Made by a program: the position numbers and the translations under genes. A model generated the notes under the pieces. That model ran no database searches. It was not told the origin of the DNA and saw only the letters and a list, made by a program, of their open reading frames with translations. Shown piece after piece: positions 14,513-53,000 of a DNA stretch of 64,000 bases; position 1 is the stretch's first letter; each line of letters begins with the position of its first letter. The DNA comes from Chara braunii (lineage: Eukaryota; Plantae; Charophyceae), in NCBI GenBank assembly GCA_003427395.1, contig BFEA01000032.1, forward strand, positions 1,720,931 through 1,784,930, read 5' to 3'.

Positions 14513-14577
<65 letters not shown>

Positions 14578-25351: not shown

Positions 25352-25410
<59 letters not shown>

Positions 25411-25752
25411 TCTTCCTCCTTCACCGCCGCCTCCCTCTTCTTGTCGGCGCCCTTTTCCCACATTCTAAAGTTGTGGCCTTACCTTCTCCTCCTCTCCCCT
25501 CTTGGCATATAACTAACTCTTCCCCCACCCCTTGTTACATTGTCAGGGGCCGAACGGTGAAATAAATTTGTCCTCACTTGGCGGATAAAGTGGGCAAGGA
25601 AAGGGTTGTTGGTCCCTTGTGCCGCCAAGAAGGAAAGGAAATGACACTTAAGCAATTGGAAGAAGGCAACTCCCGAAAGAGACTAAAGATAGTTGGTACT
25701 TAAAGCAAGGTCAGTTGACTCAACCATTATCCCGACTGCATGGCTAAGGGAA
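21759..25752 (+). repeat. 3' LTR of element 2, truncated or interrupted at ~25752
   Basis: Starts TGTAATCC immediately after the pol TAA. Similarity to the left copy stops at GCATGGCTAAGGGAA. Confidence 0.7.
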
Positions 25753-26950: not shown

Positions 26951-27204
26951 CAGGAAGCGGCGAAGGACTGTGAGAGGATAGCAAGGGCAGCTCTTTCCCT
27001 AAGAGCGAAGGAGGGCCGCAGGGAAGTTGGCAGCAGCATAGGAGGTGCCCTGCAGGGGAAGGAAGGAGAGTAGGAAGGGACAGGGCGCAGGTTGCTGACG
27101 CGACACGATGGCGGGAGGGCTAAGGAGATTGCAGGTTACGTGGAAACCGGTACCCGAAACGGAATAGCATGCGGGACGGAATAGGAGCAGAGAGCGGAGA
27201 TCGC

Positions 27205-27567
27205 TGTCGAGCGCATCGGTCCGACACCGCACGTGGCAGCGAGGGACCCTCTCGCGTGCCTACCGACACGCCAGTCCTACCGCCGGTCGCGTGGGCCAAC
27301 CAAGAACGGACTTTCGTTCCCTAACCAATCTCGTAACCTGGTACGGGTCGGTCGGCTACCCCAGCCGCCCACTCAATCAGAAAAATCACACGCGCACCAA
27401 AAAAATCGCGCGCCCTCATACTCCCTACTGGGACAAGGCAGACCTTTGCCCGTGCGCGGACGACCCTCACATTTCCTGCACGGGCACTCAAAATCCGGGT
27501 TAACCGAGCCTTTCTGTCACTTGCAAAAACCAGGGCGGATACCATTGTAAGGGTATTCGCGCCGACC
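27205..27567 (-). repeat. Short 3' terminal repeat (A+B fused)
   Basis: The first 50 bp match 40057-40106 (4 mismatches). The 321 bp from 27247 match 51466-51786 (~95% by eye). Confidence 0.93.
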
Positions 27568-29684
27568 GCTTACCGGACCATATTAAGCGACGTCCCCGTC
27601 GCGTCGCCAAATCAAAAGCTATACACTTCCTTACATTCCAAATGCTGACGAGATTAGAACCAATCCAATTAGCCGACAGACTCAGGGTTGAGGCCTCCAT
27701 CAAACCGTGCCAACACAACTATATGCTGCCAGGGTTTCAACCTGGGTCTCCATTGTCCTGACACAAGGACGCCAGTGTATTACGCATCAATACTACAACA
27801 TAAGTTCCAAAGGCCCTCAAACCATCCTCTTCCCCTTTCATCCTAGACAACCGCCGGCCTCTCATTGGGTGTCCCATTTAGTCTTTTTCTCGTAAGCAGA
27901 GCCATAACTAGGGACGCGGGCTTCAAATGGGACCTATGAAGACATTCTTTGCCTTCTTCCAACAAATTCCTCACAATCAAACAAAATATACACGTATAAG
28001 TTTGTAACCTCTCTCGGCCTTTTTTGCAGTCTAGTACAGAAATGCCAGGTCCCCTTCTGGGCCCACCGTAGCCTGGCTGATCGGGCCAGGTCTACGGCCC
28101 ACCGGGCTGTTACCTTAACGATGGTATCCCCCCGTTGGTTATACAACGATAGGCGTTTTTCCTGATAATCAGTATATCAGGACTTTCCAAAAGACTCGAC
28201 TCCTATTCCGCGGAGTAATTTCTCTGGGGCGGGCAACTCCCCTTAAACTCTTACCTCGCGGGCCCGCAGCCAGGTTATGCCGGCTAGCAGCCATCCACTA
28301 GGGGTTGCGCCCAGGTGGCACTAAACTTTACCGTTAGCTTGGTATTCCTTTAAATATGTCTCAGAGTTAGCACAGGTGGCCCGGCGGGGCATCACAAACA
28401 ATTCATAGGCCGCTGCGGGACTACGCAGGGGTCTGAAGGCATTTACCGGCCCTCCTATAATAAGCACGACATCCTTCGCTCAATCACAAACAGTCTCCCC
28501 GCCGGACCCACGAGGCCGCGGCCCCTGACTTGATCAGAGCCAGCAGTCGCTCACCCTGAGGCATCTCTCGCCTTTTTCAACCACTTCAAGCAAACATGGT
28601 TCCCTCTCGTCAGACTTTATCAACACAAGACAATGTTACCCACGCCATTCAATTTTTACCCACCCTTACTTGGTAAAGGGTGCCTCTCACAAAAGATTTC
28701 ATGACCATCCCCTTTTTGTATTGGATGACTCTTCACATGACCTCTTCCAACCATGAAGGGGCTTTGATAACAATGCAATTCCCTCCTCCCTGAACCATGA
28801 AGGGGGGTCTTAATCACCAAACAACTCAAACTGAGGGACCATCTTCCGGGTCCCCGTACAACTTAGACAATCAATATTTGGTATGGCCTAAACATGCAAA
28901 TTTTTAAATTCATCAATCCCGTAGGATTCTCACAATTTTTCACAAACAGACCGCACTCCCTCTCCTTATACTCTGCCCTCTCGCCCGTTTGTAGCAGACC
29001 GCACCAGTATACTGGAGGGTAGACAGCTTCATAGTTTACACAATCATACCTATGAGGTGTATCCTGTACACAGGATACACCTCCCACACAAAGCCAATCA
29101 TACATTAAGACAAAGCCACAAAGGTGAGAGTGATAGTAGTTGTCACAAGACAAGTCCCATAGAGTCTCAACTCATGATACACTCAGGGAGTAGAACGTCT
29201 CCCTCAAGACCCAAACACAAACACCCAACTCAAACTCTGTCCACCCGAGCATGGTTTCCGACCCCACTGTACACCCGCGGAATACACTCGGGGACACAAC
29301 ACCTAGCAAAGTCTAATGGGTGCCTAGCCCCCTGTCTCACCTAACTAGGGAAACTCATACCCAAGTCTCCCTTAACACTGAAGTAGTCTTTGCACCGCGA
29401 AATCAAAAGTGGACTGAATAGCCCCATGTGTCCTACGGCCGACTCTCATGCCCTAAGCCATAGCCTATAAAAGAAAAACTCAAAGAAGCCTCAATCAACA
29501 ATATGTGAACAAGCAGGCAGGGACTCATCCTACCACCTCTAACGTATGCACACATCTAGGGCCCCCTCAGCCAACTAAACATATGTACACCTCCAACCCG
29601 CCCCCCCTATGTGCCAACTACTCTGACCCTACTGACACATAGACATACCAGTCCCTACTTACACAATTCTTCCTGGTTCTGCCT

Positions 29685-32260
29685 TTACAACTGAGCCCTG
29701 CCCCCATCTGGAGCTCGCTCTACTATCCTGCCCTGCCTGTCGTAGAACTTGCTGTTGAACTCCGCAACTCGCTTCTCGGCGTTATCCTCTAGGAGTTCTG
29801 GGCAATCCACGACTCTATGCCCTTCCTCCTTGCACCAAAAGCAGGAGGTATCGTGCCACCTGACAGTCTTCTTCTTTCTCCCCTGCGAGCTCGATGTCGA
29901 AGGCGTCCCCATAGCCTCAGTAGTCACCTCATGACACGAGGACGATCCCATATGAGGTCCGGGCTCCATAGCCTCAGCACCCTCATCCCCTCGAGCGATT
30001 GTGCTCACTGGCCTGCATTCTGGCATATCCAACCCTCAGGGGCCCTCCTCATGAGGCCCCTCTGTCACCACCACCTCATCCCCACATGCTCCTGACGTCT
30101 GAGAGCCCCCTATGGCAGTGGGCTCACTCATGACCTCCTGCTGCTGCTGTTGCCGCGAGTCAGGCCCTCCTGAGTCCGTCCCCGTGGCCCAGGAGCCCAG
30201 CTCTGCTCTTAACTCTCCCAACCTCGGGGCATGCTCTGGGGCATCAAGTCTCTGAGGCCCCTCCTGTGGCGTGCCTATCCCCATGGTTGCGGCCAACTCA
30301 TGCAAACGCGAACCCCTCCTCTCCGTGGACATAGCCATAAGCAACTCTTGTGCGCCACCCTGCTCTTCGGCTGCGTCCAAGGGCACCTCCTGCATTGGCT
30401 CGGCCTGTCGAGGGACCTCCACTGCTGCTCCCTGGCCCGGCGAAGCCTGCCTCCCTCGGCCCTGGCCATTGACACCGGCTCGCCCCGCCTGGCTAGCCTC
30501 CCAGGCTGCCGAAAGCCTATCCACAACGACCCCCATCTCCCCAAATCTCCTCTCCCACTCAACCTCTCTGGCCTGGCTCCTCGCCCTCTCCTCGGCAAGC
30601 TGAGTAGTCAGGTGCTCCACCTCCAACTCCCTGATCCTGAGCTCATTGCTGAGTTGATTATACCACTGGAAGGATGTAACTATCATCTTGCATATCTTCC
30701 TGTCCATTCGCTCGATTGCCATTATAGTCGCAGAGAACCCCAAGTCCCCCATCTCCCTCAGCTCACTCGCCTCCTCGTCCGCCTGCCCCATCCCTCATGA
30801 CCTCTGGCGAGCCGCATCCCTCTGGCTCTCATACCTGGCCCACAACTCGTCGATCCTCTGCTCACTCGTCTTGGGCTCGACCGGCGGTGTCGGCTCTATC
30901 CCCGCCACCTCCATCTCAGCCTGTCTTGCGTGTATTTCGTCCAGACGAACCCTCACTCGGGCGGACTTCTCTTCGCGGGTTTCTCTTGGGGTTCTTTTCA
31001 CTCGCGGCCCCTGGCTCTCCAGAGTTGACGCCTCCGCCCCCATCCTCTCGCTCATGCATGGCACTGCCGGCGGTAACTCCGCTGGAACATGCTCCTCGAT
31101 AGCTAGGCTCTTGGTCACGTGAGTGGCCGATGGCAAATCAAGGGGCGTCTCCCCCCTCGCTCTCTCACACACGCCCTGACCCTCTGCCTCTGCCTCCTGC
31201 TCAAGCATAGAGGTGGCCTCAGGGGAAGACTCCGGAATCTCCTCGCTGTCTGGCTCAGGAATCCCCTTTGGCCATGAGTGTTGTGCTGGCTCTGGAACTG
31301 GGGAGCGTGGCGGGGTATCGTCTCCGACCGTGATTACCTTCCCGCCTTGAGGCCGTACCGGATCCGGCGGCCCGGCTGCCATCTCAGGATTCTGCGGCTC
31401 CTCTCGGTCTCGCATGTCTGTCTCCGTCTCGGGGTCCAAAGGCTCCTCCAATGTCACATAGCACGTCGGCTCAACTGAGCCCTTCCCCAGTCGTGAGGCC
31501 TCCTATTGAGATAGATCAAGATGAGTCGCTAAACTTTGGAATGGCGTCTCTCTTGGTATGTCCAGCTCCTGCGCTGATGGCAACGGTGAGGGCGATCTCA
31601 ACTCCTCGCTCATAATCCGTCGAAACTCAACTGCCCGGAGACCACAACCAGGGAACGACTCCTCTGCCAATGCGGGCCCTGCGGGCTCATCCTCCCGCTG
31701 TGCTGGGGCTCTCCTCCTCTCTCTGGCCAGCCCCACCTCTCTCGGTACCGGTTCCCTTGGCCTCTTGCTTCGCCGTCGCCTCTCAACCCTGGGCTCGTGC
31801 CCCTCGTGCTGTGGTCGTCCGAATGCCCTCCTGAGTTGAGCCTGGCAGTCCTCCCAATCTCGAGCCCGCCCCCGAATATGTTTGGCCACCGGCCTCTCCG
31901 CCCCCCTCGTCCAAATAAGTAGGGTCTGCACCCACTCCTCCCGCGCAATCCCCTGACTCAACATGTAGTGCTCGTATGCAGGAATGAACTCCTCCGCGTT
32001 CCCCTCCTCCAATCTAATGGGCATGCCATCACGCCCTCTAAGGGAAACTCTCAACCTCTGCATCCCGGCCTCCACATCCGGCCAAGTCAGGGCCTCCTCA
32101 CATATCTGTGCGACAGGCTCCTCGAACCGCCCTACACCCCTGAAGTGGTGAATCCTCTCTGCCACTGACCACCCTCTCTGTGTCGCATGATCCCGATATT
32201 CGTCCAAGAAGAGCTCAATGTTGTCGTCATCGAACTCAGGCGTAGGCTCCCTCCTAGGCG
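29685..32260 (-). pseudogene. Second gag-like ORF downstream of pol (~850 aa, broken by three in-frame stops)
   Basis: ORFs starting 32207, 31457, 30791 and 30032 share one frame. N-terminal capsid-like segments; C-terminal CFWCKEEGHRVVDC knuckle. Confidence 0.8.
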
Positions 32261-32540
32261 GCTCATGCTGCTCGCCTCTCCCTGCTGCTCCATCGGGCCC
32301 CTGCCGCGACCGTGTGTCCTCCCGCCCCTCTGTATGACTGCCTTCGAAAAGTCAGACCTGCACAACACGCGAGAGACAACAAACAGACACACAGCAGGGT
32401 CAGCAGCTGAGCCCATTGGCTCGGGGAAATCCCACACACACTCCACACCCATCCACCCCAATCACCCACCTATCCAATCATTCGACGAGGGTAGAGCCTA
32501 GGCGGGACTCTATTCCTAACGAGGTCTCGTGGTGCCTTAC

Positions 32541-35500
32541 CTATTCCCTGACCACGAACTTCTTCAGCCTTGTCCCTGATACCTTGTCCTGCGACCCTGC
32601 CCCATCCAGCTCTTCAATTTGGTAGGCCCCAAACTCGCCACACCGCACGATCCTATAGGGCCCCAACCATCGCTTATCTAGCTTCCTGGACCATTGTTTT
32701 TCCAGCGAGGAGTCATACAGCAGCACCACGTCTCCCACCTTCAGCAGGTCCTTCCTTATTCGGGCCATCTGGTCCCATCTCATCTTGTCCTCCATACGAC
32801 TTCTCTCTACCCGACCAGTGGCCTCTCGTAACCTTTCCTCAGCGGCTCCCACCTGCCGNNNNNNNNNNNNNNNNNNNNNNNNNNNNNNNNNNNNNNNNNN
32901 NNNNNNNNNNNNNNNNNNNNNNNNNNNNNNNNNNNNNNNNNNNNNNNNNNNNNNNNNNNNNNNNNNNNNNNNNNNNNNNNNNNNNNNNNNNNNNNNNNNN
33001 NNNNNNNNNNNNNNNNNNNNNNNNNNNNNNNNNNNNNNNNNNNNNNNNNNNNNNNNNNNNNNNCTCTACCCGACCAGTGGCCTCTCGTAACCTTTCCTCA
33101 GCGGCTCCCACTTGCCGCGCCCGTATATCGAGCAGTTCTTCAAAGGACAGGTTCACTTTCAGGTCCTGGCGCCTCCACGTCATGGAACTTTCTATGGGAA
33201 AGGTGGCATGCCTTCCGTACCATAGTGTGGCAGGCGCATACTTGGTAGTCCTTTTCATGGTAACATTTTCCACGAAAAATGCCGCTCTCAGGAACTTCGG
33301 CCACTGGTTAGGCCTCCCCTCAGTCCACTTAGCCAAGAGATTTGTGATGGTACTATGCCCTCTCTTCACAGGGGCGTTCGCCTGGGGGTGCGCGACAGTA
33401 GTATAGTTCGCTACCACGTCATACCCCGCAAGCAAGGTCTGTACCTCGTTACAGGTGAACTCTGACCCCCGGTCCATCACAAACTCTCTGACAAACGGAT
33501 AGCGCAGGTAGTACTCTTCGATGCATCTTGCTAACACTGGGCCAGTTTTCGTACGAATAGCCCGACTGTCCACGAACCCGATAAGGTTGTCCCGTGCGTC
33601 GAAGATATAGTTACTTCCATCCTCCCCGAGTGGCATGAACAACAGGTCCAAGTGTACGACTGCACCCACTTCCCTTTCCAGCCTGGGTTGCAGAGGCTCC
33701 CCAGGCCTTTGCGCTGACCTCTGTTGGCAAGGTACACAGGACTGGTAGTACTTGATGACCATAGTCAGCATTCCATCCCAATGGTATAACTCACTTATCT
33801 TTGCGCATGTGGCACTAACCCCTTTGTGCACCCCTGCTATACCATCGTGTAAGGCTGCTATGACATCGATCTGTCGGCTCCTCCCACATACGATCCTCTT
33901 GAGGTTCCCAACCTGTCGCTTTATAAACAGATGGCCATCTCTTACTACGTAGAGATGCCTCATCTTCTGGCTTTAGCACTTGCGTCCCTATCCCTTATCT
34001 TGCACGACAGGAGTAACCCCAACTCCCGATAGATCCCGTCATACTCCTCGGCACGAAAGACCTCTCTAATCTTCTCCTCTTCGAACTCGTCATCCTGGCT
34101 TTCAGGAATAAGAAGTTCGCTTTCTTCGGAACCGGTTGAGCTCCTCTGCTTAAAGTCCCCCTGCAGGAGCGTATTAGTGAGCAAGTACATCCCTCCCATT
34201 AGTTGCTCATTCTCCTCTACCTGGGTTGACCCTTCCTCTATCGTCTTGACCTCTTCGGCCAGGCTATCTGTGCCTGCCAATGCCAACTTCATCATCCAGC
34301 CAACATCCCTACTCCCCCATGGATCTTCCTCCTGAAAAGGTTTGAGGACCATCTCTTCCTTTCGCTCGTACCCCCTTGGTGCTGGCCATATGGGATGCGT
34401 GACGCAGCTAGGCACCCTCAGCGACCAGTCATTTATGTGGAGGCAGACATCCTCCTCCTGGTCTAAGAACCCGTTGACTGGTGGGGTATCTTCAGTTGAT
34501 TCTTGATTCGCCCTGTCCCAGTTGATACGGCTCAATCCATCTGCCCTATTTTTGTCCCCGGGAATCCTCTCAAATTCGAAGTTAAACATCCAAATGTAAG
34601 TCAACCACCTCGCGATGGTTGGGTCAGATGGAGTATAACTTTTCAGGGAACACGCAAGCACAGTAGGGTCCACCCTCAGAATGAGCCTCCTGCCAAAGAT
34701 ATAGTTCCGGAAGGTCCTCAGGCAGTGGAGTACCGCCAGCGTCTCCTTCTTGAACTGCGAATAGTTCCTCTCGGTCGTATTGAGAGTACGACTTTCAAAT
34801 CTTAGCGGCCTCTCCTTCCCATCTGCATCAGCCTGAATCAGGACCCCTCCTAAGGCAGTTGGCCCGGCGTCCGTCTCGACAACGAATGACTTTTCCTCCG
34901 TAGCCTCATTATTTGGCGCTCCCAGCACTAGGCCTCCTTCCCTGAACTCTCCCTTCATCCTTTCCACAGCCTTTTCCTGCTCTTCACCCCAGACCCATTT
35001 CTGATCCTGACGCACCAGCTTCCTCAAATGCTCCGTCTTGGTGGCGAAGTCCTTCACAAAAGTTCTCCAAAACCCACAGGTCCCAAGGAAGCTTCTCACG
35101 TTCGTTATCGACTGAAAGGGGACTGGCCATTCTTGGATCTTGTCCGTTTTCTTCACGTCTGGCCTCCGCCCCTTCTCATTACAGACAAAGCCCAGAATCG
35201 TGGTTTCCCTCATACAGTGCTTCGACTTGGGGCCGCTTGCCGTCAGGTTATGTTCTTTCAGCAAACCCAGGAATTGATCGATATCCTGGATGTGCTTCCA
35301 GACGAACCGCCTCATTCCTCTTCTCCTTTGGACCCTTAACCGCCAAATCATCAATGTAGGGCTGAGTGATCTGTGAACTAACCGTCTGCATGGCCCTAAT
35401 CATTTGCCTTTGCACCATTGCCACCACATTAGTCCACCCCTGAGGGCCCACATTCATGTGGATCAGCCCCCTTGGCGTATGCATCGCCGTCACCGGCCTA

Positions 35501-37432
35501 TCCGGCGGGTACACAGGAAACTGGTCATACCCAGAATAAAGGTCTATAAGTGAGATTATAAGCCTCCCTTCGCATGACTCTGGCAGGGCGTCCTCGTTCG
35601 CCAATCCTCCTGCGTCCCGCACCGTTACTGCATTCAATCGTTGCAAATTCTACACCCACCGTAGCGTTCCGTTTGGCTTGATAAAACAAAACCAAGGGGA
35701 GGCATACGGTTCACTGGAATAGTCTGCCACGTATGTCCGCATCTTCCCGTCCAAATAATCCACCACCTTCTTCTCTTCATCTGGATTTGGGTATCGCGCG
35801 CCCCTCAGGTTCCACGGCTCGTGTGGGGCGGTATGAATTCGTATCATTGAAATCTTATCTTCGTCCAACCTCCCACACTCGTCGTCATTAAACACATACA
35901 GCCTCCTCTTCATGATTTCCACCATCAAGGTCCTCTCATGGGGCAAAAGGAAGCCAGACTCGCCAATTATCAACCCTTCCTCATTCTCGTCATTGATGCG
36001 ACATGGCCCTGCCTGCGCGCGCTCCCGCATACGTCTTATCAGCCCCCGCTCTCGCTCGTAATAGGCTTCCTCATCCTGCATGGGGACCGGGCGGCGCTTC
36101 TTATCTGTAGTCTTGTACCGCCTTTGGGAGCCCTGCTTAAGCCCTCCCCTAAAAAAGGCCGACTTGTCGTTCGGGCCTGGGCCATCGCAGGGTCCCCTTT
36201 TCTCCCGGGAAGTCGATAGATCAGCTCCACTTCCCCCACCTGAGGGTTTTCCAGGACCTGCTCCCTCAATGCATTTATCGCTTCAGGGTCCGCCATATCA
36301 TGCGCTGCCACCACCTCCATTGCCTTATTCACATCGTTAAGGCTCAGAGACAACACCTCGCGTGCTCCTTCCTCCTCTTTCTCCTCCTTGAGTCTCCGTA
36401 GCGCGTGCTCAGACTCCTCGAAGGTAAAGGAGCCGAGGTTGAGCCTGTTCCTCCCACTTCCGGGCCCTGTGTTCCGGCACTTAATAATTTCGTAATTCCC
36501 GCAGACCGGATCAGATAGGGCTGGGATCATTGCGCCCTCATGCCTATTGAAGACCAAGGTCTCCGTTCGGCAGAGGAATGATCTTCCAAGAAGGATACGC
36601 GTGTCGACATCGGGCATGACGAAGAAACACGTATTTCGTAATTCCCGCAGGCCGGATCAGATAGGGCTGGGATCATTGTCCCCTCATGCCTATTGAAGAC
36701 CAAGGTCTCCGTTCGACAGAGGAACGATCTTCCAAGAAGGATAGGGTGGTCGACATCGCGCATGACGAAGAAAAACGTTCGCGCCCTTACCCTCCCGATC
36801 TCCACCATCACATTAGACGCGGTGCCGCAGAAAATGCCCTTGCAATTGGCGCCATGCAGCACACCATGGTCCAAGTGATCCACCTCCAGCCCTAGCATAG
36901 TCGCGTCCCGCTCCCGGATGATATTCGTCTCGGTGCCTGTGTCCACCATTGCGATGCTTGGCTGGTCTCTCACCTTCAGATCCACCAACCCACATGCCAC
37001 ACATTTCCAGTCGATCCTGGTGCCCACCTCTGTCCACTCTATCTCCCTGGGCAGAATTGAGCTCAGGTGGACGTTGGGCACTAGCCTCTGCGAGAGCCGC
37101 CCTTTCAGCTCGCCACGGAGTCTTGGCGCTGACGCCAGGATGTCTTTTAAATTCATCAAATCGTTGTGGCCTTCCAGGAGCTTATCTACCATCCGCTCCA
37201 CGTCAAAACCTTCCTCCAGCCAAACTGCGTACTTCTTCCTTTTTGGCACGCCATCGTGCAGGCTCGGCTCCGCTCCTCCCTGAATCCCTCTCTTCTTGGC
37301 CCTCTGCTCAGCTCGCCGATCTTCTTCCTGGCGGAGCCTCTCATCCTCTTCGTCATCACCCTCATCTTCCTCTTCTTGAACCTCTACCACTTCTTTCCTT
37401 CGTTCAGGCTCGGGCTCCTTTCGAGGAGGCAC
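32541..37432 (-). pseudogene. pol: pol of element 3 (PR-RT-RH-INT)
   Basis: AMVDTGTETN (PR). YASPWFCFIKPNGTLRWV, IDLYSGYDQ and PYIDDL (RT). ETDAGP and KKETLA (RH). HDGIAGVH..CVPC, VHLDL and MDRGSEF (INT). Stops, frameshifts and an assembly gap. Confidence 0.97.
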
Positions 37433-37444
37433 CCGACCAGGTGC

Positions 37445-39438
37445 CTAGCTGGGCCCTTGACTGGTGGTAGCCTTACTTTGGCCCCTAGTCTGCGCGGCCT
37501 GGGGCACCCTTCTATGTGACGTAGGGGGCTTGAAGGTCATCCCTGACCTAGGACCTGCCCCGACCGTCGCCACGCTTGGACACCCTTGCGGTCCTGATGA
37601 TGACTCCGAGCCGGACACATAGAGCATTACCTCAGGAAGATTCATTTCCCATTCCCGGGCCTCTTCGCACATCACCCTTAGCCGTTTCTGATATCTGCCG
37701 ACCTTTGCAAGCAGGTCCTCCATCCTTTTCAGGATGGTCGAGGATGATTCTCTCACCACCTCCCGTGCCTCGTCGCCGGACTCAACAACTATGGTCTCCT
37801 CCTTTATAGTCCCCGCTTTCAGCCGCTAAGTCACTTCCTCATTTTCATCCATAATCTCCTCGACTCTCACACCCGGGTCTTGCCTTTCCTGCCATATCCT
37901 GGACATTGTTGGGGCCGTTGGAGGCCCTGCTGCTGCTCGCCTGAGGGCTTCCTGCCTGATTCCTCCCGAGGTTTTGGGATCAATATGCTTTCCCTACCGA
38001 TCGTATATGTCCCCATCCATACAGGTGGATATTAGTCCTGCCAGTTCGTCGTCCCGCCGCTGTTGGGAGAATCATACGGTGTGGCCCACCTCGCCACAAT
38101 GCCAACAAGTTGCGTTCCGCCAGTGGAAGCGGGGCCTCCGATACCCTTGGCCCCCTCCCTGGCTGCCTTGGCCACGTTGGTTCTGACCCCCTTGACCATT
38201 CCAGCCTCCTCCACGGCCTCCACCATTTCCTCCTCGCCCCCGGCCGCCCCCTCCTCTACCCCCTTGGCCCCGGCCCCCATTGCCCTGCCCGCCTTGTCCT
38301 TGGCGCCCTCCCCCGGCCACACTGGCTTGCGAGGCCTGTTGGGAGGGCGGCAGTTGAGCCACAGGCTGTTTGATGGGCTCGAATAGGGGACTATGTGTCC
38401 CGTGTGGGCCTGGCTCCCTCCACACGAGACACAGTGGTTACAACTGGGCCAGGGAGCAGACTGACAATGCTGCACCCAGTGCCCACAAGCTGGTGGCGGC
38501 CCCATGTGTGATGGTCCTGCTGGCATCGGTGCGGCCGCGGCGACTGGCGGTGGTGGGGCAATGGCTTGGGGAGCCTGCCCCTTCCCTGACCCATGCCCTC
38601 CCTGCAGCAGATTGCGCTGCTTCCTCTGGGCCTTGGTCAGGACTTGGGAACCCGTCTCCCCTCCGCTGTAGTCTTCTTGCCCAGCCTCCTCATCCACTGC
38701 CCCTGACACCCGGCCTTGGGCCACTAGCACCCCTCTTTTTTGTATCTCTGCTTTGTTATCATACCCCAAGGCCGCCAACACGTCCGTGACGATTCTCTTC
38801 ACCCCTGGGGTTCCGTATGCGGTAGCATCCCTCTCGTTCCTCTTGCGCCTTTGCAGCCTCATTTGGTGTTGCTCCACCTGGTCCAGGCTCCCTTCTTCCC
38901 CTCTCTTGTCAATGGTTGCCCAGGTGAGCCTCTCACTCCCTTCCCCATACTTGGTCAGCTCTGTGGCCTCCGAGCCCGTAAGCAGCTCTGTGGCTTCCTC
39001 AGAAATCCCGTGCACTTTCCTCGCCTTTTTCTTGAACTCGTGCACAAACGCCCCAATAGTAGAGAAATCTTCCTTATTCATGGCCTCCAGGTCTGCCATA
39101 GTCAACAGGCCGTCCCCCAGCCTATACTTCCTTCGCATTAGGTCCCCAAACCTTGTCCAACTGGCACCGGCGCCATCCACGACCTTAGTTACTTCCCGAT
39201 GGTGACTATGCAGGACGTACCTCAGGACCCTCTAGAGCTTGACCTCATCTGACAATCCCACTAGCGCCTGCTCTGTCAGATCCAGCCAGTCAGATACCCG
39301 ATCCCCTTTGAAGTGAAATGTCTCGACCTTTGGGACATTGCTCGACGCCCTCTCGCGCTTGTCCAAGGCATCGATGAGGTCGTCGAGAGTCACAAGCCTC
39401 CTCCCACCATCCGCCATCTCCTCTGGCATTTTGGCCAA
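37445..39438 (-). pseudogene. gag: gag of element 3
   Basis: VPKVETFHFKGDRVSDWLDL capsid start, an RGG-rich tract and a decayed CWHCGEVGH knuckle, located between the PBS and pol. Confidence 0.9.
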
Positions 39439-39788
39439 CCGCCTTCGACTTCGATCTTCCTGTTATAAGAGACGATGGGACAAAGGACCCTACTCAGCGA
39501 CTCAACCCTTCATGACCCTATCGGGTTGACCACTTAGACACCCCATACACCCGGCAGACATTCCTTTTCCTATTTCCCTTAGGCTCACCTAGATAAGGCT
39601 TATCCTTACCATAGAACTTTCTCACCCACTTGCTTCATTCAAGCTGCCAACCAAGCCGCCAATCAATCAATCATTCAACCCTCAATCGTATAGGCCACCA
39701 TACAGTCCATCTCATAGTTCTTCTCTTACTCACTCATATGCCTAATTTCTCCCTCACTCCCATACCCGGACGTCGTTCCACCAGGGAC

Positions 39789-39826
39789 CTGTCTCTTATA
39801 CACATCTAGATGTGTATAAGAGACAG
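39789..39826. other. Nextera mate-pair junction adapter (two inverted Tn5 mosaic ends): assembly contamination
   Basis: Exact CTGTCTCTTATACACATCT+AGATGTGTATAAGAGACAG between two copies of a ~192-bp segment (39597-39788 and 39827-40018). Confidence 0.99.
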
Positions 39827-40036
39827 GGCTTATCCTTACCATAGAACTTTCTCACCCACTTGCTTCATTCAAGCTGCCAACCAAGCCGCCAATCAATCAA
39901 TCATTCAACCCTCAATCGTATAGGCCACCATACAGTCCATCTCATAGTTCTTCTCTTACTCACTCATATGCCTAATTTCTCCCTCACTCCCATACCCGGA
40001 CGTCGTTCCACCAGGGACAACGGTAGGCTTCTGTTA

Positions 40037-40054
40037 TCCCTGACAACGGCGCCA
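40037..40054 (-). promoter_or_regulatory. Primer-binding site, tRNA-Asp type
   Basis: Minus strand TGGCGCCGTTGTCAGGGA, 2 nt after the repeat's terminal CA; compare the plant Asp PBS TGGCGCCGTTGCCGGGGA. Confidence 0.9.
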
Positions 40055-42369: not shown

Positions 42370-42820
42370 ATCCAGAAAATTTTGGCAGCGCTTCCCGTAG
42401 AAAAAGTGCCTTTTCCGAATTTATACAAGCCCAAATGTGAACTCAACTTCCAACCTTGAGCTCAACTTAGATAAAGTCTGGCTAACTACTTAGTTTTGCA
42501 GAAATTTCGGCAGCACCCCCCCTTTAGAAAAGTGCTCTCACAAAATTTATACAAAGCCAAGTTTAGAACCTAAAACTAATTCTGACATCTCAAAGCCCAA
42601 TTTTGTCTAACTCCCTGAATTAGCAAAAATTTGGGCAGCACTCCCTTTAGAAAACCTTTAGAAAAGGAGGCTTTCCAGATTTTTACTAAGTCAGATATGA
42701 CGAAAAGACAAGCTGAACTTTGACAAGTCAAAATTTGTCAAACTCCTTGAATCTGCAGAAATTTCGGCAGCGCTTCCCGTAGAGAAAGTAGCTTACCAGA
42801 ATTTATACAGGTCGAAGTAT
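42370..42820. repeat. Four diverged ~128-bp tandem units
   Basis: AAATTTYGGCAGCRCT(T)CCC..TAGAAAAG at ~42376, 42502, 42627 and 42759. Confidence 0.8.
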
Positions 42821-43104
42821 AATAGCGAGCCTCAGAAGATGTCAAAAATCGATCGAAGTAAAATAAAGTCAGCTCAGGAAATGCAGGAATTGACCTAACT
42901 CCTACCGCTCTAGCACGTGGCGAGCCTCTAAAGCAACTACCTGTCAACCTGAAACCAGACCAAGTAGTAATCTCACTCAGCCACATGCAGGCCAACCCAC
43001 AAGGGTAAGTACTCTCACCATCCCCAAGTCAATCTGAGCAAACAATAGTTCATGATCTTTCAGCGAGTTACCCCCTCATACCCAACTTACATAAGGCATA
43101 GGTC

Positions 43105-44040
43105 AGGGCACCTGAACTTACAGAGCGCGCCCAACTTAGCCAGGCCCAAAGTCAGAATACCCAAACTTATAGAGCGTTCTGACTTGGCCAGGTATACACG
43201 AACAGAGGGCACAACTACTTCTCTCTTCTTTAGGCGTATGACTAGATCACTCCAGTCGCACTGATCTGTTTAAATAGCCAATTTATATATACCTTTCTGA
43301 ACTTAGTCTTCAAAGGGGACGTAAGGCTGAGCCGCTCAACTTAGAACATTGCTCAGCCTGTCCAGGTTTACCTTCAGTTATATCTCTTAGTTATACTCTC
43401 TTCAGTTGTGATAAGCCATAATCGGGCTACCTAAACTTATAGAGCCGTTCGACTAGCCTGTTCTTAATAACATAGTAATATAGTATAGCCAAGTTATATC
43501 CATTGGGTTCCAACATTTGTAAGGCATTGGGTCAGGCTACCTAAACTTATAGAGCGGTCTGATCCTCAGCCAGGTTTGTTTCTCTCTGATCCAATCTGTG
43601 CGAGGCAATGGGATAGGCTACCTAAACTTATAGAGCGGTCAGTCCCCTGCCAGAATTATTCCCTCAGAACAAAACAGGAGAAGGGTTGAACCACCTAAGC
43701 TTATAGAGCGGTTCAGGCCTCCTTTTTCAGAACCAAAGAAACTGAGAGAACCCCAAATAAAACAAGGCAACCCAAGGTACCTAAACTTATAGAGCGCCTT
43801 GGGTCCCTGAAAATCACCTGCAGTCAAACCCTCACAAGTCAGAGCAGCCAGGACACCTAAACTTATGGAGCGTTATGACCCTCTATGCAATTCACAACAC
43901 TAGGTCTCCCCAAACTTATGGGGACATCCTAGCCCTCAGAGCTTCAAGCTACCTAAACTTATAGACCGGTCTGAGGCTCCATGCAATCCAAAAATAAACA
44001 AAGCGCTGAGCTTCCCCAATATTAAGGGGACCTCCCAGCC
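43105..44040. repeat. Array of ~11 hairpins with a conserved ACCTAAACTTATAGAGCG core and variable complementary arms
   Basis: Core at ~43110, 43159, 43429, 43539, 43620, 43693, 43779, 43855, 43908, 43951 and 44013. Confidence 0.9.
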
Positions 44041-47000
44041 TTAGTGACCCAGCCAGTCTGCACACAATACTACCTTTCTCCCAACCTTCCCCCAGATGCA
44101 ACCCATTTCATTCACAATATGCTTTCAGGCAATCAACAACCGAAACTGAGGTTGCACATATGTTCTTTTACTTCAATCTGGCTTATGTCCTGAAAGTCAA
44201 ACTCAGAACCAAGTACAGGATCCACACAATACACTCTCAAACATAGAGAGACGTATAGGTAGGGGTTATAATTGGGTCTATAGAGGGAGTCAAGGGTTTA
44301 CCACTCAGTTCCCTGCCTTTAGGACTCCGCCTGAGCCCCGACAGAGCTCCCGCAATCGGTGGGGCAACCTTCCACAAAGGCCTTAGCGCGGATTACGGGC
44401 CACACGCCCACCTGCCGCCTTCCTCTCAGAGCCAAAGGACCAGACTTTAGAGTAAGAAGGGCAGGATAAGAAGGAGTAAGACTCTCAGTTAGAAGGGCAG
44501 CTCAGACTCGCACGAGAGGGCCTTCAAGTCTTCAGCGCCTGAGGGCCCCGCAATGATGGCTGGAGAGTAACAGCTTGGCCCAGTCTCGAAGTCCGACGGT
44601 CGAAACTAAGCACCTAACACCCTCCTAACCGCAGTACCGGCCTCCCTACCCGTAAGGTCTGGTCACCGCACCTGGTCTCAGCACCCCTTCCCAATTCAAT
44701 TGCTGCCGCAAACTGCCTTCAGTCGTCACCAGTGGTACGCAGCAATAGCTAGCAACGGCAGCCCCTCCCTTTCCCCACGCAGTCCAGTCACCCCCCCCAC
44801 ATCACATCTTTGCCTCCTTTGACACGGCCCAACGGTCTTCTGACGATAAGTGTCTCGCAGAAGCGCGAAGGTCTCCCCGGTGACTTCGAAACTGCCCCCT
44901 TCCTCACGCCGGCGGACAGGGAACTCCGATGTCGGGGCGAGCCAGGTACCGACCACCGAGCAAGTTCCCCAACTTCGCGCCCGCGTACGCGCAGTTCCTT
45001 CCGACCAAATACGCCAAATCGACTGAATCTTTCGTCGATACGCGGCCACGTACATCCCTGCTTACTAACTTCGAGCCCCCTCCTCTTTACTGACTCCTTT
45101 TCCACTATTCTAATGTTAAATCTAACTCTACCCTGCAGTTCGCCCGGGCAAGGAACCCCCAGATCGATCCTTACCTCGTCCAATTCCGTAAGGAAATGGG
45201 GGAGATACTCTTCCTTCGCCCCCCTCCGTATCTGCTCCCGCCATCACTTCGCACAGCCCCTCACATTAGTACTACCCAAACTAACACTTTACTACTAATC
45301 CTGATACCGTCATCACACTTGCCTACCTAAAAAACGTCAGAAACGAGACTTTATTCACTCGCGTTTGTAGAGGAATCGGCGCGCAATCACCTTCCGCACC
45401 TTCACTCCGCCATATCCCCGACGCACCAGTTTCTGTACTAACTACTAAACTACTGACTTTCTTCTTAATCCGGCCTCACAGACATACTTGCCTTGGCTAA
45501 AACCCCTCAAGTGGAACTTCCACCACCCATCTTCGTCGAGGAATGGGCGCAAGCCACCCTTTCTCTCATTGCTACGCCCTCCCCCTTCTTCGCATGTATC
45601 TGGCGCGACTTCGCGCCTTTATCCATTCTCCTTCACCTTGCCTTGCTCCCCTCTCATCTTTCTCCCCGTGTTGAAGTCAACCCGAATCATGCTCTATAGC
45701 GTGGACACCACGGAAGCCAGGCCAGGAAAGACCAAAACAGCAGCAAGCAACGAGGGGGCCGCTCACAATTTATGCGTGTCGGCCTTGCGCAGGGACCGCG
45801 CTAATCTTCTCTGCATCGTCCCAGTTTCAATGGATGCCCTAAGGACTTCGACAGGGGTGATGCCTCGCGGTGCTACACAAGATCGCCCAACCCTTCCACG
45901 CTGGCGCTGTGCAGGTCTACTCTGTATCATCCCGAATCCAACGGATGCCCCCGGAGGACTTATCTGCGATAGCGCCCTTCGGCGCTTCTTCTTACCTCTC
46001 CTTTCGCACGCGCCTTCCTTGATTCCCGTCCGGGTTCACCCCCGGACTTTCGCAGCTGACCCGTGCGCCGTGGCCACACAAATCTTCCCAGCATCCTTCC
46101 TGTTTCGACGGATGCCTCATAAGACCAGGCCGGGGTTAACTCCTTACACAGACACCTGAGGCCACACAACCCACGCAGCCTCCTTTTAACACGTATCCGG
46201 CCCGGCCTGCGACCGGGTCCATTCCCGGCCTCGTGCTCACTGCTCTTGTACTGCGACTATACGGATCCCTCGATCCGATTTTACCGGCGCCCCAAAAAAA
46301 TCTCCATCGGCAGGGGTCTCCCAGCGCCTCCAAAGGCCATTCGGCCTTCTTCTCTTACTCTTTGGGCGCGCACCTAACTCGACTCACGTCCCGGTTCTTC
46401 TGTCCGCCCTTACCCCCGTTCTTCGCCCAGATCCGTCCTCGACACCCTTCTCTGTCCCTTCTCCTCTCCGTACCTCCCCTCTATATCGCTAATCCCGCGG
46501 ATCCTGCCTATGAAGATCCGATCTCTTGGGGGCACCGGAGAACTTCGTCGCGTTAGCGCTTCCGAGTTTTCACACACCCTCACGCCACCACTTCACCCAG
46601 GGCGAGTGTCCTGGCCGCCTCTTGCCTTCATTCCCAGCCCAGCGTCGGCCCGCCCCTTAGCCGTTCGTGGGTGTATTTTTCCGCTGCTCCGCCCCCCTAT
46701 ACGGGTGTGAGAGAGAACTAATAATAATAACAAAATTCCGAAGTAACATAAATTATTCACAAATAGGCGTATAGCACCCCACAACACGTACGACACTCGA
46801 GCGGGGACCCCGGCCCCCATAACTTGTAAAAAGGCGAAGGGGATAGTCCCATAGGCCCATTAACCCCTCAAGCCTCACCGCCGCGCTCCTCCGTTCCTTT
46901 CCGCATGCCGTTGGCCTCGATCCCTCTGTCCGCTGCACACCAGTCCGCCGCCGTAACCAATAGGGCTAAGCCCAAGCCTGTGACTGGCAGGCGCGACTCC

Positions 47001-50000
47001 CCATATAAAGTGGCGCCGCGTGGCGTTTCGAGCCAGGATACCACCCGGCCGCCCTTTCGGCCCGCACTTGTGCCCGCGACCCTTAAGCATCCGTGTCGGT
47101 GTGAGGAAACCCGGGGAGGGGTCGCCCACTGTTCGCTGAAGCCAAGGGCAACAACGCCTGTCACTCGCTGCGCCCGCTTTCGAGGTCCTCAGCGATCAGT
47201 AGGGGGTCGGGGTTTGCGTTGCCTGTCACGCTCCCCCTATCTGTACAAAACTTAGACTTCCCGTACGGTTGACAGGTGATGTTAAAATCCAAATATAAAT
47301 AAATTTCCGTGTATTAATTTGTCGATCAGCGATCAAGCCTCAACTTGTTCATACAGACTTCCCAGGAATAAATTGCAGTACAAGGCGAGACAATACCATA
47401 CTTCAGAAAGAGAAACTAGGTGTTTTTGGGTTTTACCTCAGCAAATGCCAACAGACACACCCTTCAGATTGCCAGTGCATTTCTAGTTGTCCCGAGTGGC
47501 TAGTTCTTCACTCGCAGTCTGCCCTTAGGGCTTCTGTTCCAAAGTTAGATGGCGGGGGTGGATGTGATACTGTTGGTAAAACCCTCAAGCCGACAACCCC
47601 AATCACAAAATTCAAAAATTTGCAGTGTACTTGTATCGACAAGGGCGACATCAAATCATCAGCCCTAGAGGATGGTCATAATCAATCCTAGTTGCCATGT
47701 TGTTTCGAGGCATTTTACAAGCTTTTTTTTTTTGGAAATTGATGACCGAATAAATTGAAGCACACCCAGTAAGTGGGTAAGGTCAAGGACAAGTTAGGTG
47801 ACGTTTCCTTCCATCCTCACCAGGCCAATAGATACCATTAGCATATACTTCCCATCTCACACCCTCTCGGACCTTCAGTCCATTCTCTTCCTCCCCATGC
47901 AGTTCCTGTCTCTCACTTTCAGTCTTTCTGTTTATTCTCGTCTTCCCCGTTCGTCCTCTGATTCTTACCGATCAAGGAACCTCACTTGAGGAGCAGCCAT
48001 GGGCTTACCCCCGAGTTCAGGTTTGGGAGGGGCATGAGTGTCAATTACGAGCTTTGTTTTTGGCTACACTGACATACTGGTTCGCGATTACCATCAGCGA
48101 TCGCCAGTTTGCCAGCGTCTAAACTCAACTCTTGTAAGAGTAATCGAACCGTCAGGCAGTTCGGGTTGAGTTTATCACCAATCCCACTTGAATCTCAGCG
48201 GTACTGAAGTGCTCAATGTTCTGTATGTTGACTTATCTGGACGACTGTCGTATTTGAGAAACTGCACGTTCGTGCCAGCGTTTTGATAAACAACTTTGTT
48301 AGTGTATCGGTTTCTTCTCCCAACTGAAACTTTTGTAGATCAGCGGATGTGTTCCCTTGATGAACCATAGGTCAGTTGAATTATAGTGCACCAGAGGATG
48401 ACTTCTCAATGCTCGTTGATTCAGCAGTCACTTACGTTTTAGTTGCTTGATGGTGCGCTCTGGATACTTGTGGGTTCAACAGTCACTTGAATTGTAGTGG
48501 GACAGCAGGTGTGTTTTCAATGGTTGTGGAACCTGCAGTCGCTTGAATTTTAGTAGAGCAGAAAATGAATTCTCTGTCTTTATTGAACCGGCATTCTCTT
48601 GAATTTTTCCGGGTCAGGGGAAGTGTCCTCTTGATGATTATCGGACCAGTTCTCTTTGCTTGCCCTAACTTTCCCAAGCACCGAGCAGGTCTTCACCCCT
48701 CATACTTCAACTGTTCCCTCACACACTCACCCCTCGTTAATTAGATCAAGAGGGATGGCTGCACTCTGCTGCCGTCTTCCCTCAACAGGCGTAAAGCCTT
48801 AGATAGGGGTCACTCAGAGTGCTCACCCAGCGAGCCCGCTCTCTCCCTTGTTGCTCCGGTCATTCCTCACTCGCGTGTCTTAGCTCGCCCCTTCTCTCCC
48901 CTCTCTCTCTTTCTCGCGCCGTCTCTTAGCTTTCCGGCCTAATGGCTGGTCACCCAGACATTGACAATCTGTGAAAGGACACTCTATGCACCTCAAAGAT
49001 TCAGGCTGCGTTGAGCTTGCCGTTTGTCAGACATATCATCTCGTCAATCTTCTGAGTAATGGCTGTAATCTTTATTTATGATTTAATTACTTCCGACCAG
49101 TTCGAACAGGCAACTGTAAAGGGTCGTCGACATATCATTTTCGCTTCGAAACAAAGCGGGTAGGCAGAATCCGAACGCGACTGAAGCCGGGATGCTTCCC
49201 ACAAGATGTGAAGGGCCATGTTTACCTTGTAGAAAGTACACTATTTTACCGAATTGTGTATGCGGCGCTAGCTGGTCTGGCGGTCGGCGTTGCTGAACTC
49301 CGATGAACCTGACATTAGCCAGTGGTCACTCCCCCTTTGAGAAGAGTGAGTGCCTTCGGATTCTCTCGCTGATACACTCATACACACTCTCTGGACCTCT
49401 CTACTCACACTCAGTCTCGCTCTCTCTCAATCAGACTTTGTCCTTCCTCTCTGTCTGTCTGTCTCTCTCTCTCTCTCTCGTACCTCCTAAGAGCGAAGGG
49501 GTATGGAAGTGTTTCAACTTCTCAGTTACGCTCACCTGGGGTTAGAGGCAGCGCTGATCGGGTACAGTCTCCCCTCCGCTCAAGCGGGCTTCTCGCCCGA
49601 TTGCCCTTGAGCAGCGCAGCGTTCCGCCGCTCCTTGCACGAGGCTCCTCTCGTCTTTCCCCTCCTCTCCTTGATGACTTCCGTAACCGCTTCCCCACCGT
49701 CGTGGCGAGGGCGAGGGACACCTTGCACGACTTTCCTAATCCCCCCCTCTGTCCACTGTCCCTGCCTGCATACGTACTGTGACGCGAGCTGGGTACACCG
49801 TGCATACCTCCCCTGCTCTCTAGTCCCCTTTCCCTTTATGGTTTTCCCGCACAGCTGAACGTGGTCCTTCCTCCTCCCAGGTCCAATCCGTAGGCCTTCG
49901 TAGGCTGAAGGTAAAAGCAGGGCCAAGCCCAGCGCTGGTGGAATGGAACCCATATACAGTCTCAGCGGAACCTGCCACTGAAACCTGCTGTAAAAATAAA

Positions 50001-53000
50001 GCCAGATACTTCCGTATGGCAGGTACTCATACCAAACCTGTCACTTTTGTGCTCCAAAGCCAACCACGGTACTTAAAAGCAATTGTATTATGCCAGTTAC
50101 CAACACAAAAGTCGAACTGCGGTCCAGCTGTTGCTCCCAACACCCAGTTACCATGCTTGTTCCGTGTCTGTCCCGGATCAGAATGTCGGGCCGAACCAGA
50201 AATAGCCTCTTGACAATTCTGAGCTGTCAACACTGAACTGAGAATAAATCACTGCGAACCTGAAAGTGATGTAGTGATGTGTATCATACCGATGCCGGAT
50301 ACCGTAGAAAACTGAAAAACCAGGGTAGTANCGAACCTATTCCGGACCTGAAGCAAACTGCNGCCAAGGTTCCAAACCTGGAAAAACTGTCGTAGTGGCC
50401 CCGGNCCTGAGAATAAATCACCGNAGCTGTCCCGAACCTGAAAATAAGTCACCTTAGTGAAACAGCTGTCACCGGGCCTATACCGTACCTGAAGCACGTC
50501 AGACACCGTAGGACCTAGCCACCCCGTATCAACCCTCGTATCCGTACCGCACCAAACGCCATAGTCGACCCAAGGCACCTGTCCATGCGACCCCCGCTCT
50601 CAGAACATCCCAACTGCGATAAGATTAGTAATCAATCAAACCAGCGAAAACGACGCAGGGAGCCTCGGTCATCGGCAGTAGTGAAAACTGATAAAATTCG
50701 GGGAAAATGCTCAATCCGGGGTCAGGGCTGATGGCGGGTGACCAAAGCGAAATTAGCCCAATCTCCCAATAGTCATGGGTTCCCGTCCCTTTTATCGTTT
50801 TTAATAATTCTCCCCTTCCTTAATTCTGTTGTCGGAAATAGTAAATTAATCGTAAGTTCCATAAACTTCAATCCTGGGAAAGTTTAAATAAATGACCGAA
50901 TTCTTTGTGTTTCTTTTGTCTTTTACGATTTTTTTTTTTTTTAATGTTTTTAATTTAATTGTCGGGAAAATAAAATAACAAAGGTATTCCCCCTAGAATT
51001 AAATGCTGTGAAAAAATGAAGAAATTAGGGGATATTATATCTTTTCCTTCTCGCCTACTGGTCCTAACCCCTCTTTCCACCTTTAATTATGGTGCTAAAA
51101 TAGACAAAAATTTGANGCCCCATTTCGCCCCGGTCGTATGCTGCAAAAACGTTGCGGCGAGGTCAACTCCCTTGATGCCTCTCCGCGGCAGGTCAATCCC
51201 GGTCTAACCCTCGGAACGGTCGGAAATGGCAGTCCCTAGACATGCCGAGTCCGGTCACCCATCTCGCCATCTTTGAAGGTTACTCATAAAGCTCAGTGCG
51301 CCCAAAATGAGGGGTGCCCTGAGTTCCCCTAATTTTTGTTGCCTGGTCATACGAGACTTCCATCAAAACACGGATTTGCCCCTGAGCCTAAGTCGCAAAA
51401 CTGCGGATCTCAGGCGGCGCACTCCCTGTGGCCTCCTGACACCGGTCCACCACTTCGCGTCGTGGCCCTCTCGCGTGCCTATCGGCACGCCAGTCCTACC
51501 GTCGGTCGCACGTGCCAACCAAGAACGGACTTTCATTCCCTAACCAATCTCGTAACCTGGTACGGGTCGGTCGGCTACCCCGGCCGCCCACTCAATCAGA
51601 AAAATCACACGTGCGCCAAAAAAATCGCGCGCCCACATACTCCCTACTGGGACAAGGCAGACATTTGCCCGTGCGCGGACGACCCTCACATTTTCCGCAC
51701 GGGCACTCAAAATCCGGGTTAACCGAGCCTTTCTGTCGCTTGCAAAAACCAGGGCGGATACCCTTGTAAGGGTATTCCCGCCGACATCGCTGTAAGACGG
51801 AAGGACGTCAGGAGCACCGAGGAAAGACGTGGGACGGGGCTGTACCGGCATGACAAAGTGTCGGGGACCACGCGGGACCAGGGGACGGCGTGGTGCCGAC
51901 AGGGCAGAGTACCAAGAACCGCGTGAGACCGAGGGAAAGGACGCAGTGTAGGCGGGCCGAAGTGTCGGGGACCGCGTGGGCCTAGATAAAATGTTGGCAC
52001 TAGCGGAACCACTAGCAGGACGGGTATCGACAGTATAAAGTGTCGGGAGCCGTCGACGGGGGCTGAAGGTCGGAGCAATCGGCAGAATAATCGACAAGGA
52101 GCCCAAGGAGGAGGGTGCGCGAGAGCGGGTTGTCAACCGGAATGCGCCGGGAAAATAGGGGGGGAACTAGGAACAATAAGAGAAAGAGGAGAAGTCGGGT
52201 GCTGATGAAAGTTGCCAACGGAACGGAGAAGACGGGCGTGAGACGATAAAGACGGAGGGTACCTGGAGCGACCCAGGGGGATCATGGATCAGACGCAACG
52301 ACAACAAAAATAAAATAGCCTGACGCCTGGTGGACGGGAGCGCTCGGGCCAGGAGTCCGGATGACAATAATGAGTGTCGCCGCGACAAGCGCCGACGGGA
52401 GGTGCCAAGGGGAAAAAGAGGAGGGAACAGTAGTAATGAGGAGGCCGACCGGCGGTCCGGGTTATTCGGGACCAGCCAGGTCGAGAGCAACGAACCGGGC
52501 AAGTTCCGAGGGCTCCACGTGGAGAAAAGGCTGGCCGGGGAAAATCGGAGAAAGGGGGTTTCAAACGGGAAGCGGCGACAGCAAAAAGGAGCTTCCTTGA
52601 ACCTTGGGGGTACCACTGCTGCAGTCCGAGGTGTGACAGCGATATGCCGGCTGCAAAATCAGACCTTGGGTAGGGTCCCACAGCTAGAAAGAGGAGACAT
52701 AGCTGTTAAACACTAGTCCCAACAGAGATAAAAGAGGGAGGAGAGGAAAAGGGGAGAAAAAGGGGGAGAATGAGACAAAGGAGGATGATTGGGTGGAGGA
52801 AAAACTGCCGCCAGGTTGGGACTGCAGCGGTAGGGACTGGCAGGTCTCAATAATGACCTCATCCCTCCTAGATCCTAGGCGGGCAGTCCGGATTGCAGAA
52901 GATAAGGTCCTTGGGGCATTATCTCTGCAATATCTGAATTTAAGCAGCAAAAATAAGGAAAAATGCTAATGTGATTTGGTCGGCTCATTTTTGGGCCTTA

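Follow-up and report, generated by a model that had tools for sequence, protein, structure and literature searches.

Introduction

Internally deleted long terminal repeat (LTR) retrotransposons arising by illegitimate recombination are said to have been described by Devos in 2002 for Arabidopsis and by Ma in 2004 for rice. In Oryza brachyantha, such elements were formed by illegitimate recombination between short direct repeats (PMC3615480). The giant plant Ty3/gypsy elements of the Ogre/Tat type reach about 24 kb with LTRs of up to about 5 kb (PMC6317226, PMC3485330), Phygy of Physcomitrella generates a 4-bp target-site duplication (TSD) with preference for NCGN (PMC6317226), and Cassandra terminal-repeat retrotransposons in miniature carry 5S rDNA in their LTRs (PMC10853983). 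The locus compared here with these systems lies in a window of 64,000 nucleotides of Chara braunii (assembly GCA_003427395.1, contig BFEA01000032.1, positions 1,720,931 to 1,784,930 of the forward strand) and is one old, decayed Ty3/Gypsy insertion of a Chara braunii family with giant LTRs. Its 3' LTR of 362 bp is, with a probability put at roughly 0.85, the product of a one-off microhomology deletion between 8-bp direct repeats, for which no new replication mechanism is needed.

By size and layout alone the element resembles Ogre/Tat, having very large LTRs with tandem repeats, an extra open reading frame (ORF) after the integrase and large non-coding regions; as in Ogre/Tat, it is a non-chromovirus-like Gypsy in which no chromodomain was seen. 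It differs from that group in its LTRs of 7-8.3 kb, in the length of intact elements, which would come to about 28-29 kb, and in its host, a charophyte alga. With Phygy it shares a 4-bp duplication with central CG, a likeness by target site alone, Phygy being short and almost entirely coding, unlike the Chara element. Literature searches turned up no account of this Chara Gypsy family.

Terminal repeats of the window element

All element coordinates are given on the plus strand of the window, and the element sense is the minus strand. The first 321 nt of the LTR are called B, the last 50 nt A and the interior between them X. The terminal features are as follows.

27201-27204 (left) and 51787-51790 (right), no strand: TSD TCGC, fitting the 4-bp NCGN target of the family
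27205-27566, minus strand: collapsed 3' LTR of 362 bp, with B at 27255-27566, the 8-mer at 27247-27254 and A at 27205-27246
40057-51786, minus strand: 5' LTR of 11,730 bp, made of 7,384 bp of native sequence, a nested 4,342-bp element and the 4-bp duplication of the latter
40057-40106, minus strand: A, last 50 nt of the LTR, with the 8-mer CGAGAGGG (sense) at 40099-40106
40107-51465: spacer of 11,359 bp between A and B
51466-51786, minus strand: B, first 321 nt of the LTR, starting with TGTCGG in sense, with the second 8-mer at 51466-51473

Read in element sense, B is followed by 11,359 bp, A, the primer binding site (PBS), gag-pol, extra ORFs and the fused B-A. This split layout had been reported in the initial annotation, which called the extra ORFs gag2, and all of its coordinates hold. 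The same is true of the 4-bp TSD TCGC, which is present on both flanks of the element; a 5-bp duplication ATCGC was considered and rejected, its terminal A being found also at the boundary between 5' LTR and PBS of every copy. The LTRs have TG...CA ends, reading TGTCGG...CTCGACA in all copies, and the 3' repeat of the window is internally deleted. The outer ends TGTCG..CGACA and the inner ends TGTTG and CGACC were read as first described, and the inner ones are ordinary point changes from TGTCGG...CTCGACA; the inner ends of other copies are canonical, among them those of L008, one of the related copies introduced below.

The 8-mer, CCCTCTCG on the plus strand, occurs at 27247, 40099 and 51466, once at the fused junction. 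These positions were given correctly at the outset, and the motif is not exclusive to them: 12 matches are found in the window against 2.5 expected, 9 of them on the plus strand within the element. Excluding the 8-mer, A of the short LTR is identical to 40057-40106 at 38 of 42 positions (90%), and B is identical to 51466-51786 at 295 of 313 (94%).

The order B ... A ... internal region ... B-A gives the element superficially split repeats, like those of DIRS, Ngaro and PAT. It encodes, however, a DDE integrase (Integrase_H2C2, rve) and not a tyrosine recombinase, it is flanked by a TSD, and the split is found in one copy only. Since an integrase is present and TSDs are made, the element is not a DIRS-like split-repeat element.

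Giant LTRs in the related copies

The comparison set consisted of 10 related loci (L001-L010) from GCA_003427395.1, reached via gene models, so that copies with readable ORFs were favoured; L003 holds two copies, L003a being nested inside L003b. Sequence homologous to 40107-44560 was found directly upstream of A and PBS in L001, L002 and L003a, with the same junction, and all 10 loci hold homologous sequence between B and A. As L001 and L002 carry the spacer sequence at the same junction, the spacer belongs to the family, and the 11,359 bp are the LTR's own interior plus a later nested element of 4,342 bp.

Both LTRs proved to be long where they could be compared. In L003a the 5' LTR consists of B, about 8.2 kb and A, and the 3' LTR of L003b begins with B and runs on into the same interior. 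The LTR pair of L004 (1293-7201 and 22058-27821) is 92-93% identical over 5.9 kb, until the end of the locus, and that of L005 (1576-6724 and 21351-26896) is 94% identical over 5.2 kb, after which the 3' LTR is interrupted; the pairs of L007 and L009 are 91-97% and 96.5% identical. L008 is complete, with a 5' LTR of 5,720 bp and a 3' LTR of 7,605 bp that differ by a 1.8-kb indel, and with a perfect 4-bp TSD, GCGC. In three copies the 3' LTR is complete up to A and CTCGACA, with unrelated flank beyond; it measures 7,439 bp in L006, 7,605 bp in L008 and 6,832 bp in L010. Complete 5' LTRs measure 8,324 bp in L002, about 8,226 bp in L003a, about 8,303 bp in L004 and 8,021 bp in L005. The LTR of the family is thus normally about 7-8.3 kb long. 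Its plan comprises TGTCGG, about 600 nt of conserved sequence, a hypervariable part of 2-3 kb with U6-like units, about 4.8 kb of conserved sequence and CTCGACA.

The readable 3' LTRs are long in 8 other copies, and the fused B-A junction was seen in the window copy only. These data bear directly on the suggestion, made in the initial annotation, that a family-wide non-canonical replication remakes a long 5' and a short 3' end in each cycle. The long form does stand on the 5' side in L001, L002 and L003a, and no classical polypurine tract (PPT) lies beside the 3' LTR, both of which speak for such a mechanism. It is nevertheless scarcely credible in the face of the 8 copies with long 3' LTRs, three of them complete to the terminal CTCGACA, of one complete element (L008) with two long LTRs and a perfect TSD, and of the absence from the other copies of the 8-mer that it requires at the B/X boundary. 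Symmetric copies exist (matching long pairs in L004, L005, L007, L008 and L009, complete long 3' LTRs in L006, L008 and L010), the fused junction was seen at the window locus alone, and by the criterion that the initial annotation itself had set the suggestion is refuted.

Another alternative offered with it was an insertion into a 363-bp LTR. The true LTR would then be short, and a mobile element, for example hAT-like, would have entered later as 40107-51465 with an 8-bp TSD. In favour of this, the 8-mer stands precisely on either side of the 11,359 bp and singly at the "empty" site, as a TSD classically would. Against it, neither terminal inverted repeats nor internal LTRs were found in the segment, and its ORFs encode neither a transposase nor any other Pfam domain. 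Moreover, both LTRs of the other copies have homologous sequence at this position, the divergence of which keeps pace with that of the coding region; these copies do not have the flanking 8-mer in duplicate, and no empty site was found in the 10 other loci. Such an insertion is very improbable and was rejected, and the element is not the host of a hAT-like one. A reading of the spacer as a spliced intron was rejected as well, no GT-AG or GC-AG pair being found at any register of the 8-mer.

Probable deletion between the 8-bp repeats

At the X/A boundary the 8-mer is conserved in nearly all copies, with CGGGAGGG in L001 and CAAGAGGG in L010. At the B/X boundary the family consensus reads CGGGACGG, with TGGGATGA and similar variants also present, and a perfect CGAGAGGG is found in the window copy only. 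Because the perfect 8-mer stands at B/X only here, two lineage-specific changes created the direct repeat, whose two copies are separated by about 7 kb, or by 11.4 kb if the nested element is counted. The 3' LTR would then have lost everything between the two copies of CGAGAGGG in a single event, one copy being left at the junction. The 94% and 90% identity of the two halves of the short LTR to the 5' LTR lies in the range of the other LTR pairs.

The undeleted state is ancestral, and the repeat is present at both breakpoints of the intact paralogue and singly at the junction. Such a pattern is the usual mark of illegitimate recombination in plant LTR elements (PMC3615480). The points in common are the short direct repeat at the edges of the deletion, of which the intact paralogue has two copies and the junction a single one, and an old element whose relatives have suffered deletions too. 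The window element is unlike the usual derivatives in that the deletion takes nearly the whole LTR and spares both of its ends, and in that an independent truncation in L001 breaks where the right edge of this deletion lies. A one-off microhomology deletion in an 11.7-kb LTR had been among the initial proposals and is supported by the symmetric relatives and by the copy-specific 8-mer at B/X.

It was also considered whether the short 3' LTR is an assembly artefact, produced when a repeat was collapsed or wrongly joined in a scaffold of short reads, since the assembly contains unmerged overlaps and many Ns, one of these gaps being inside the element. Such an artefact is improbable: the nearest Ns are more than 5 kb away from 27205-27566, an overlap of 8 bp is far below the k-mer of any assembler, a matching TSD lies in the flank past the short LTR, and 22 differences separate B and A at the 3' end from their 5' counterparts, which hence do not derive from the same reads.

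A breakpoint at a fixed position would also be accounted for if the asymmetry did not arise by deletion in situ and a long-LTR copy had instead undergone ectopic recombination or gene conversion with an aberrant cDNA or with a relative that has short LTRs. In yeast, Ty1 cDNA is known to convert resident elements. No short-LTR relative was found in the 10 loci, however, and the right-hand arm of homology would measure only 50 bp, which leaves this explanation a slender chance.

As regards the step at which the deletion took place, about half of the weight is given to illegitimate recombination or end joining by the host after integration, favoured by the occurrence of such deletions throughout the other copies, which show further unrelated internal deletions. 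About a third is given to a template switch during reverse transcription. Whichever step was involved, the asymmetry is neither heritable nor a property of the family.

Breakpoint shared with L001

Several points weigh against a one-off deletion of this kind. The B-A junction is unique within a sample of 10 other loci, of which 8 have a long 3' LTR that could be read, and the join at 27247-27254 was read from the assembly. In addition, the right breakpoint of L001 is the first nucleotide of the same X/A 8-mer that bounds the deletion in the window, a coincidence that a random deletion on the host side does not predict. L001 is truncated at its 3' side, its integrase (...GAGATGAGGG) being joined directly to TGGGAGGGTCCC..., which is the X/A 8-mer followed by A. 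The A of L001 ends in CTCGACA beside an NCGN flank, and the start of its 5' LTR is missing from the assembly. About 10 other deletions in the copies have scattered endpoints, and an exact coincidence would be expected by chance in about 1% of cases, a rough estimate that was not computed.

It is tempting to speculate that the genomic RNA of the element begins at the X/A boundary, so that U3 would measure about 7-8 kb and R plus U5 together 50 nt, and that both truncated 3' ends came from reverse transcription; this is possible, with odds well short of even. Nascent DNA would switch onto the 3' end of the 50-nt minus-strand strong-stop DNA, guided in the window copy by a match of 7-8 nt, GAGAGGG. 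A simple ectopic first jump would shorten both LTRs, and a spare strong-stop DNA or an intermolecular plus-strand transfer would therefore be needed for a long 5' LTR; with either of them the 5' LTR would be of full length and the 3' end would start exactly at R. A physical DNA end at X/A, the foremost candidate being the 3' end of the minus-strand strong-stop DNA, would explain the shared breakpoint and would make A the equivalent of R plus U5. The C followed by G at the X/A boundary fits a pyrimidine-purine initiator. A jump of an approximately 50-nt strong-stop DNA had been invoked initially to preserve a family-wide asymmetry; this asymmetry does not exist, and the role of A as the strong-stop segment may survive, given that L001 breaks at the same nucleotide.

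LTR interior, nested element and U6-like units

The following features were recognized in the interior of the 5' LTR.

40107-44560, minus strand: 3' part of the LTR interior, conserved at 70-89% identity with other copies and containing tandem arrays (42377-42816 and 43093-43993)
44561-46747, minus strand: hypervariable part of the LTR, alignable within an LTR pair only and not between copies
45748-46123, minus strand: three U6 snRNA-like units (46123-46043, 45958-45898 and 45845-45748), match to the Rfam U6 covariance model RF00026 of 59.8 bits, full length
47100-51441, plus strand: nested 4,342-bp element, TGTGAGG...CCTGACA, with TSD TCGG/CCGG at 47096-47099 and 51442-51445

The length of 11.7 kb of the 5' LTR is due to the nested element, without which it measures 7,384 bp. 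The nested element is missing from the other LTRs that cover its site; a second copy, 93% identical, is located in the extra-ORF region of L007 (14116-18658) with the TSD ACGT, and the 4-bp duplications of both copies are of the NCGN type. No ORF was found in the 4,342-bp element, which is probably a solo LTR or a non-autonomous LTR element of another family that used the same kind of integrase.

No Pfam match was obtained for 10 ORFs of the LTR interior in the window or for 4 long antisense ORFs of other copies. The antisense ORFs show no protein similarity between copies and are a by-product of the C-poor, G-rich sense strand. A stretch of 210 nt at 40172-40382, which all copies have and which lies 65-275 nt upstream of A, is 75% identical in inverted orientation to 7953-8164, next to a tandem array at 8.2-10.7 kb.

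The U6-like units were found in the hypervariable LTR part of the window copy and of L002-L008, with 1-5 units per LTR, always in element sense and about 110-600 nt apart. Every copy that keeps the hypervariable region carries them, and none occurs elsewhere in the window. The ACAGAGA box reads GCAGAGA in the window unit, and inspection by eye of the sequence by the units revealed no upstream sequence element, TATA box or RNA polymerase III (pol III) promoter. Judging from their sequence, the units are most likely decayed and non-functional. Like the LTR of Cassandra, that of the Chara family contains the sequence of a pol III small-RNA gene, which is passed on together with the LTR. The two differ in that the Chara sequence is U6-like, that each LTR has several decayed units of it, that the Chara element is an autonomous giant and that no pol III promoter elements were recognized.

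Internal region

The internal region contains, from the 3' to the 5' side of the element, the features listed below.

27567-40056, minus strand: internal region of 12.5 kb with frameshifts and stops, colinear with L003-L010
29685-32207, minus strand: extra ORF region past the integrase (the gag2 of the initial annotation), kept in L003b, L004-L007 and L010
32541-33963, minus strand: integrase with H2C2 zinc domain, rve core and GPY/F-like C-terminus; an assembly gap runs through it
32805-33117, no strand: assembly gap 32859-33063 with the same 54 nt on either side, present as a single copy in L004, L005 and L006
33960-35354, minus strand: RNase H ORF, RT_RNaseH 1.3e-24
35248-35646, minus strand: reverse transcriptase (RT) fragment, RVT_1 6.7e-9
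36527-37432, minus strand: aspartic protease ORF, Pfam match
38032-39180, minus strand: gag-position ORF, homologous to the N-terminal parts of P0217, P0159 and P0081
40038-40054, minus strand: PBS TGGCGCCGTTG(TCAGGG), 2 nt past the LTR end, kept in all copies

The Pfam domains of the minus strand follow one another as in Gypsy (protease, RT, RNase H, integrase), and the element has the features expected of a Gypsy retrotransposon, with a putative PBS but no recognizable PPT. All strong protein matches are hypothetical proteins of Chara braunii, GCA_003427395.1. The gag-position ORF of the decayed window copy gave no Pfam match. In the extra ORF region a single CCHC knuckle at 29802-29843 is borderline (zf-CCHC, 20.5 bits against a cut-off of 20.8), and an origin of this region as a duplicate of the first gag was rejected, no similarity between the two being detected. 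The PBS presumably matches the 3' end of tRNA-Asp; no tRNA gene that could supply the primer was found in the window or in the fetched loci.

No purine run abuts the 3' LTR, as had been observed at first for the window copy alone; the non-purine sequence GGTCCGGTAAGC is conserved at this place throughout the family. The sequence before the 3' LTR reads ...GACGGGGACGTCGCTTAATATGGTCCGGTAAGC in four aligned copies (window, L003b, L004 and L005), with few changes in L006-L010. The missing PPT is thus a trait of the family and not of the window locus. The nearest G run stands about 30 nt upstream of the 3' LTR (27567-27610 and its equivalents in L003-L010).

The 54-nt edges of the gap in the integrase, 32805-32858 before the Ns and 33064-33117 after them, both translate to GAAEERLREATGRVE. 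Once the Ns and one of the two 54-nt edges are taken out, 259 nt in all, the integrase core continues in frame into the C-terminal part with WLGPYRIV, and the stretch is present once in the related copies, with nothing extra between. The in-frame integrase, the duplicated edges and the single copy in the relatives show that the gap is a spurious, unmerged overlap of contig ends and that no sequence is missing.

Target sites and surroundings

The family targets NCGN with a 4-bp duplication. The flanks of the copies in the window, L001, L002, L003, L005, L006, L008 and L010 gave GCGA, CCGT, CCGG, CCGG, ACGC, GCGC and ACGT, with GCAG as the exception; a central CG was thus found at 7 of 8 sites, against a CG frequency of 0.05 (p about 6e-9).

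The window consists almost wholly of repeats. A direct repeat pair of about 4 kb (10943-14922 and 22115-25752), 75-88% identical and made largely of tandem arrays of 91, 53 and 163 nt, brackets a distant RT homologue at about 19093-20160 on the plus strand; the arrangement probably represents a further retrotransposon with large LTRs, directly upstream of the one described here. At 56164-58023 a 54-nt unit is repeated about 34 times in a long array, past assembly gaps at 54589-54998 and 55603-55802, and (CT)n tracts are located at 14.5, 25.4 and 58.0 kb.

Implications

Standard programs for the detection of LTRs often cap the LTR length at 7 kb or less. Programs with such caps would miss or mis-split this abundant Chara family, the LTRs of which, at 7-8.3 kb, exceed the maximum of about 5 kb found in surveys (PMC6317226, PMC3485330). 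The U6-like arrays are a second example, after the 5S sequence of Cassandra, of a small-RNA gene riding in an LTR.

If the truncated 3' ends did arise by strand transfer at the start of R, the combination of a giant U3 with a tiny R would make a family intrinsically prone to shed 3'-truncated progeny, and the truncation junctions would map the start of transcription without RNA data. Should the shared breakpoint be confirmed genome-wide, it would offer a sequence-only way to locate the start of retroelement RNA. With the one-off microhomology deletion preferred here, the rule that LTR replication yields two identical LTRs stands also for this family, and the asymmetry of the window element is damage to one copy.

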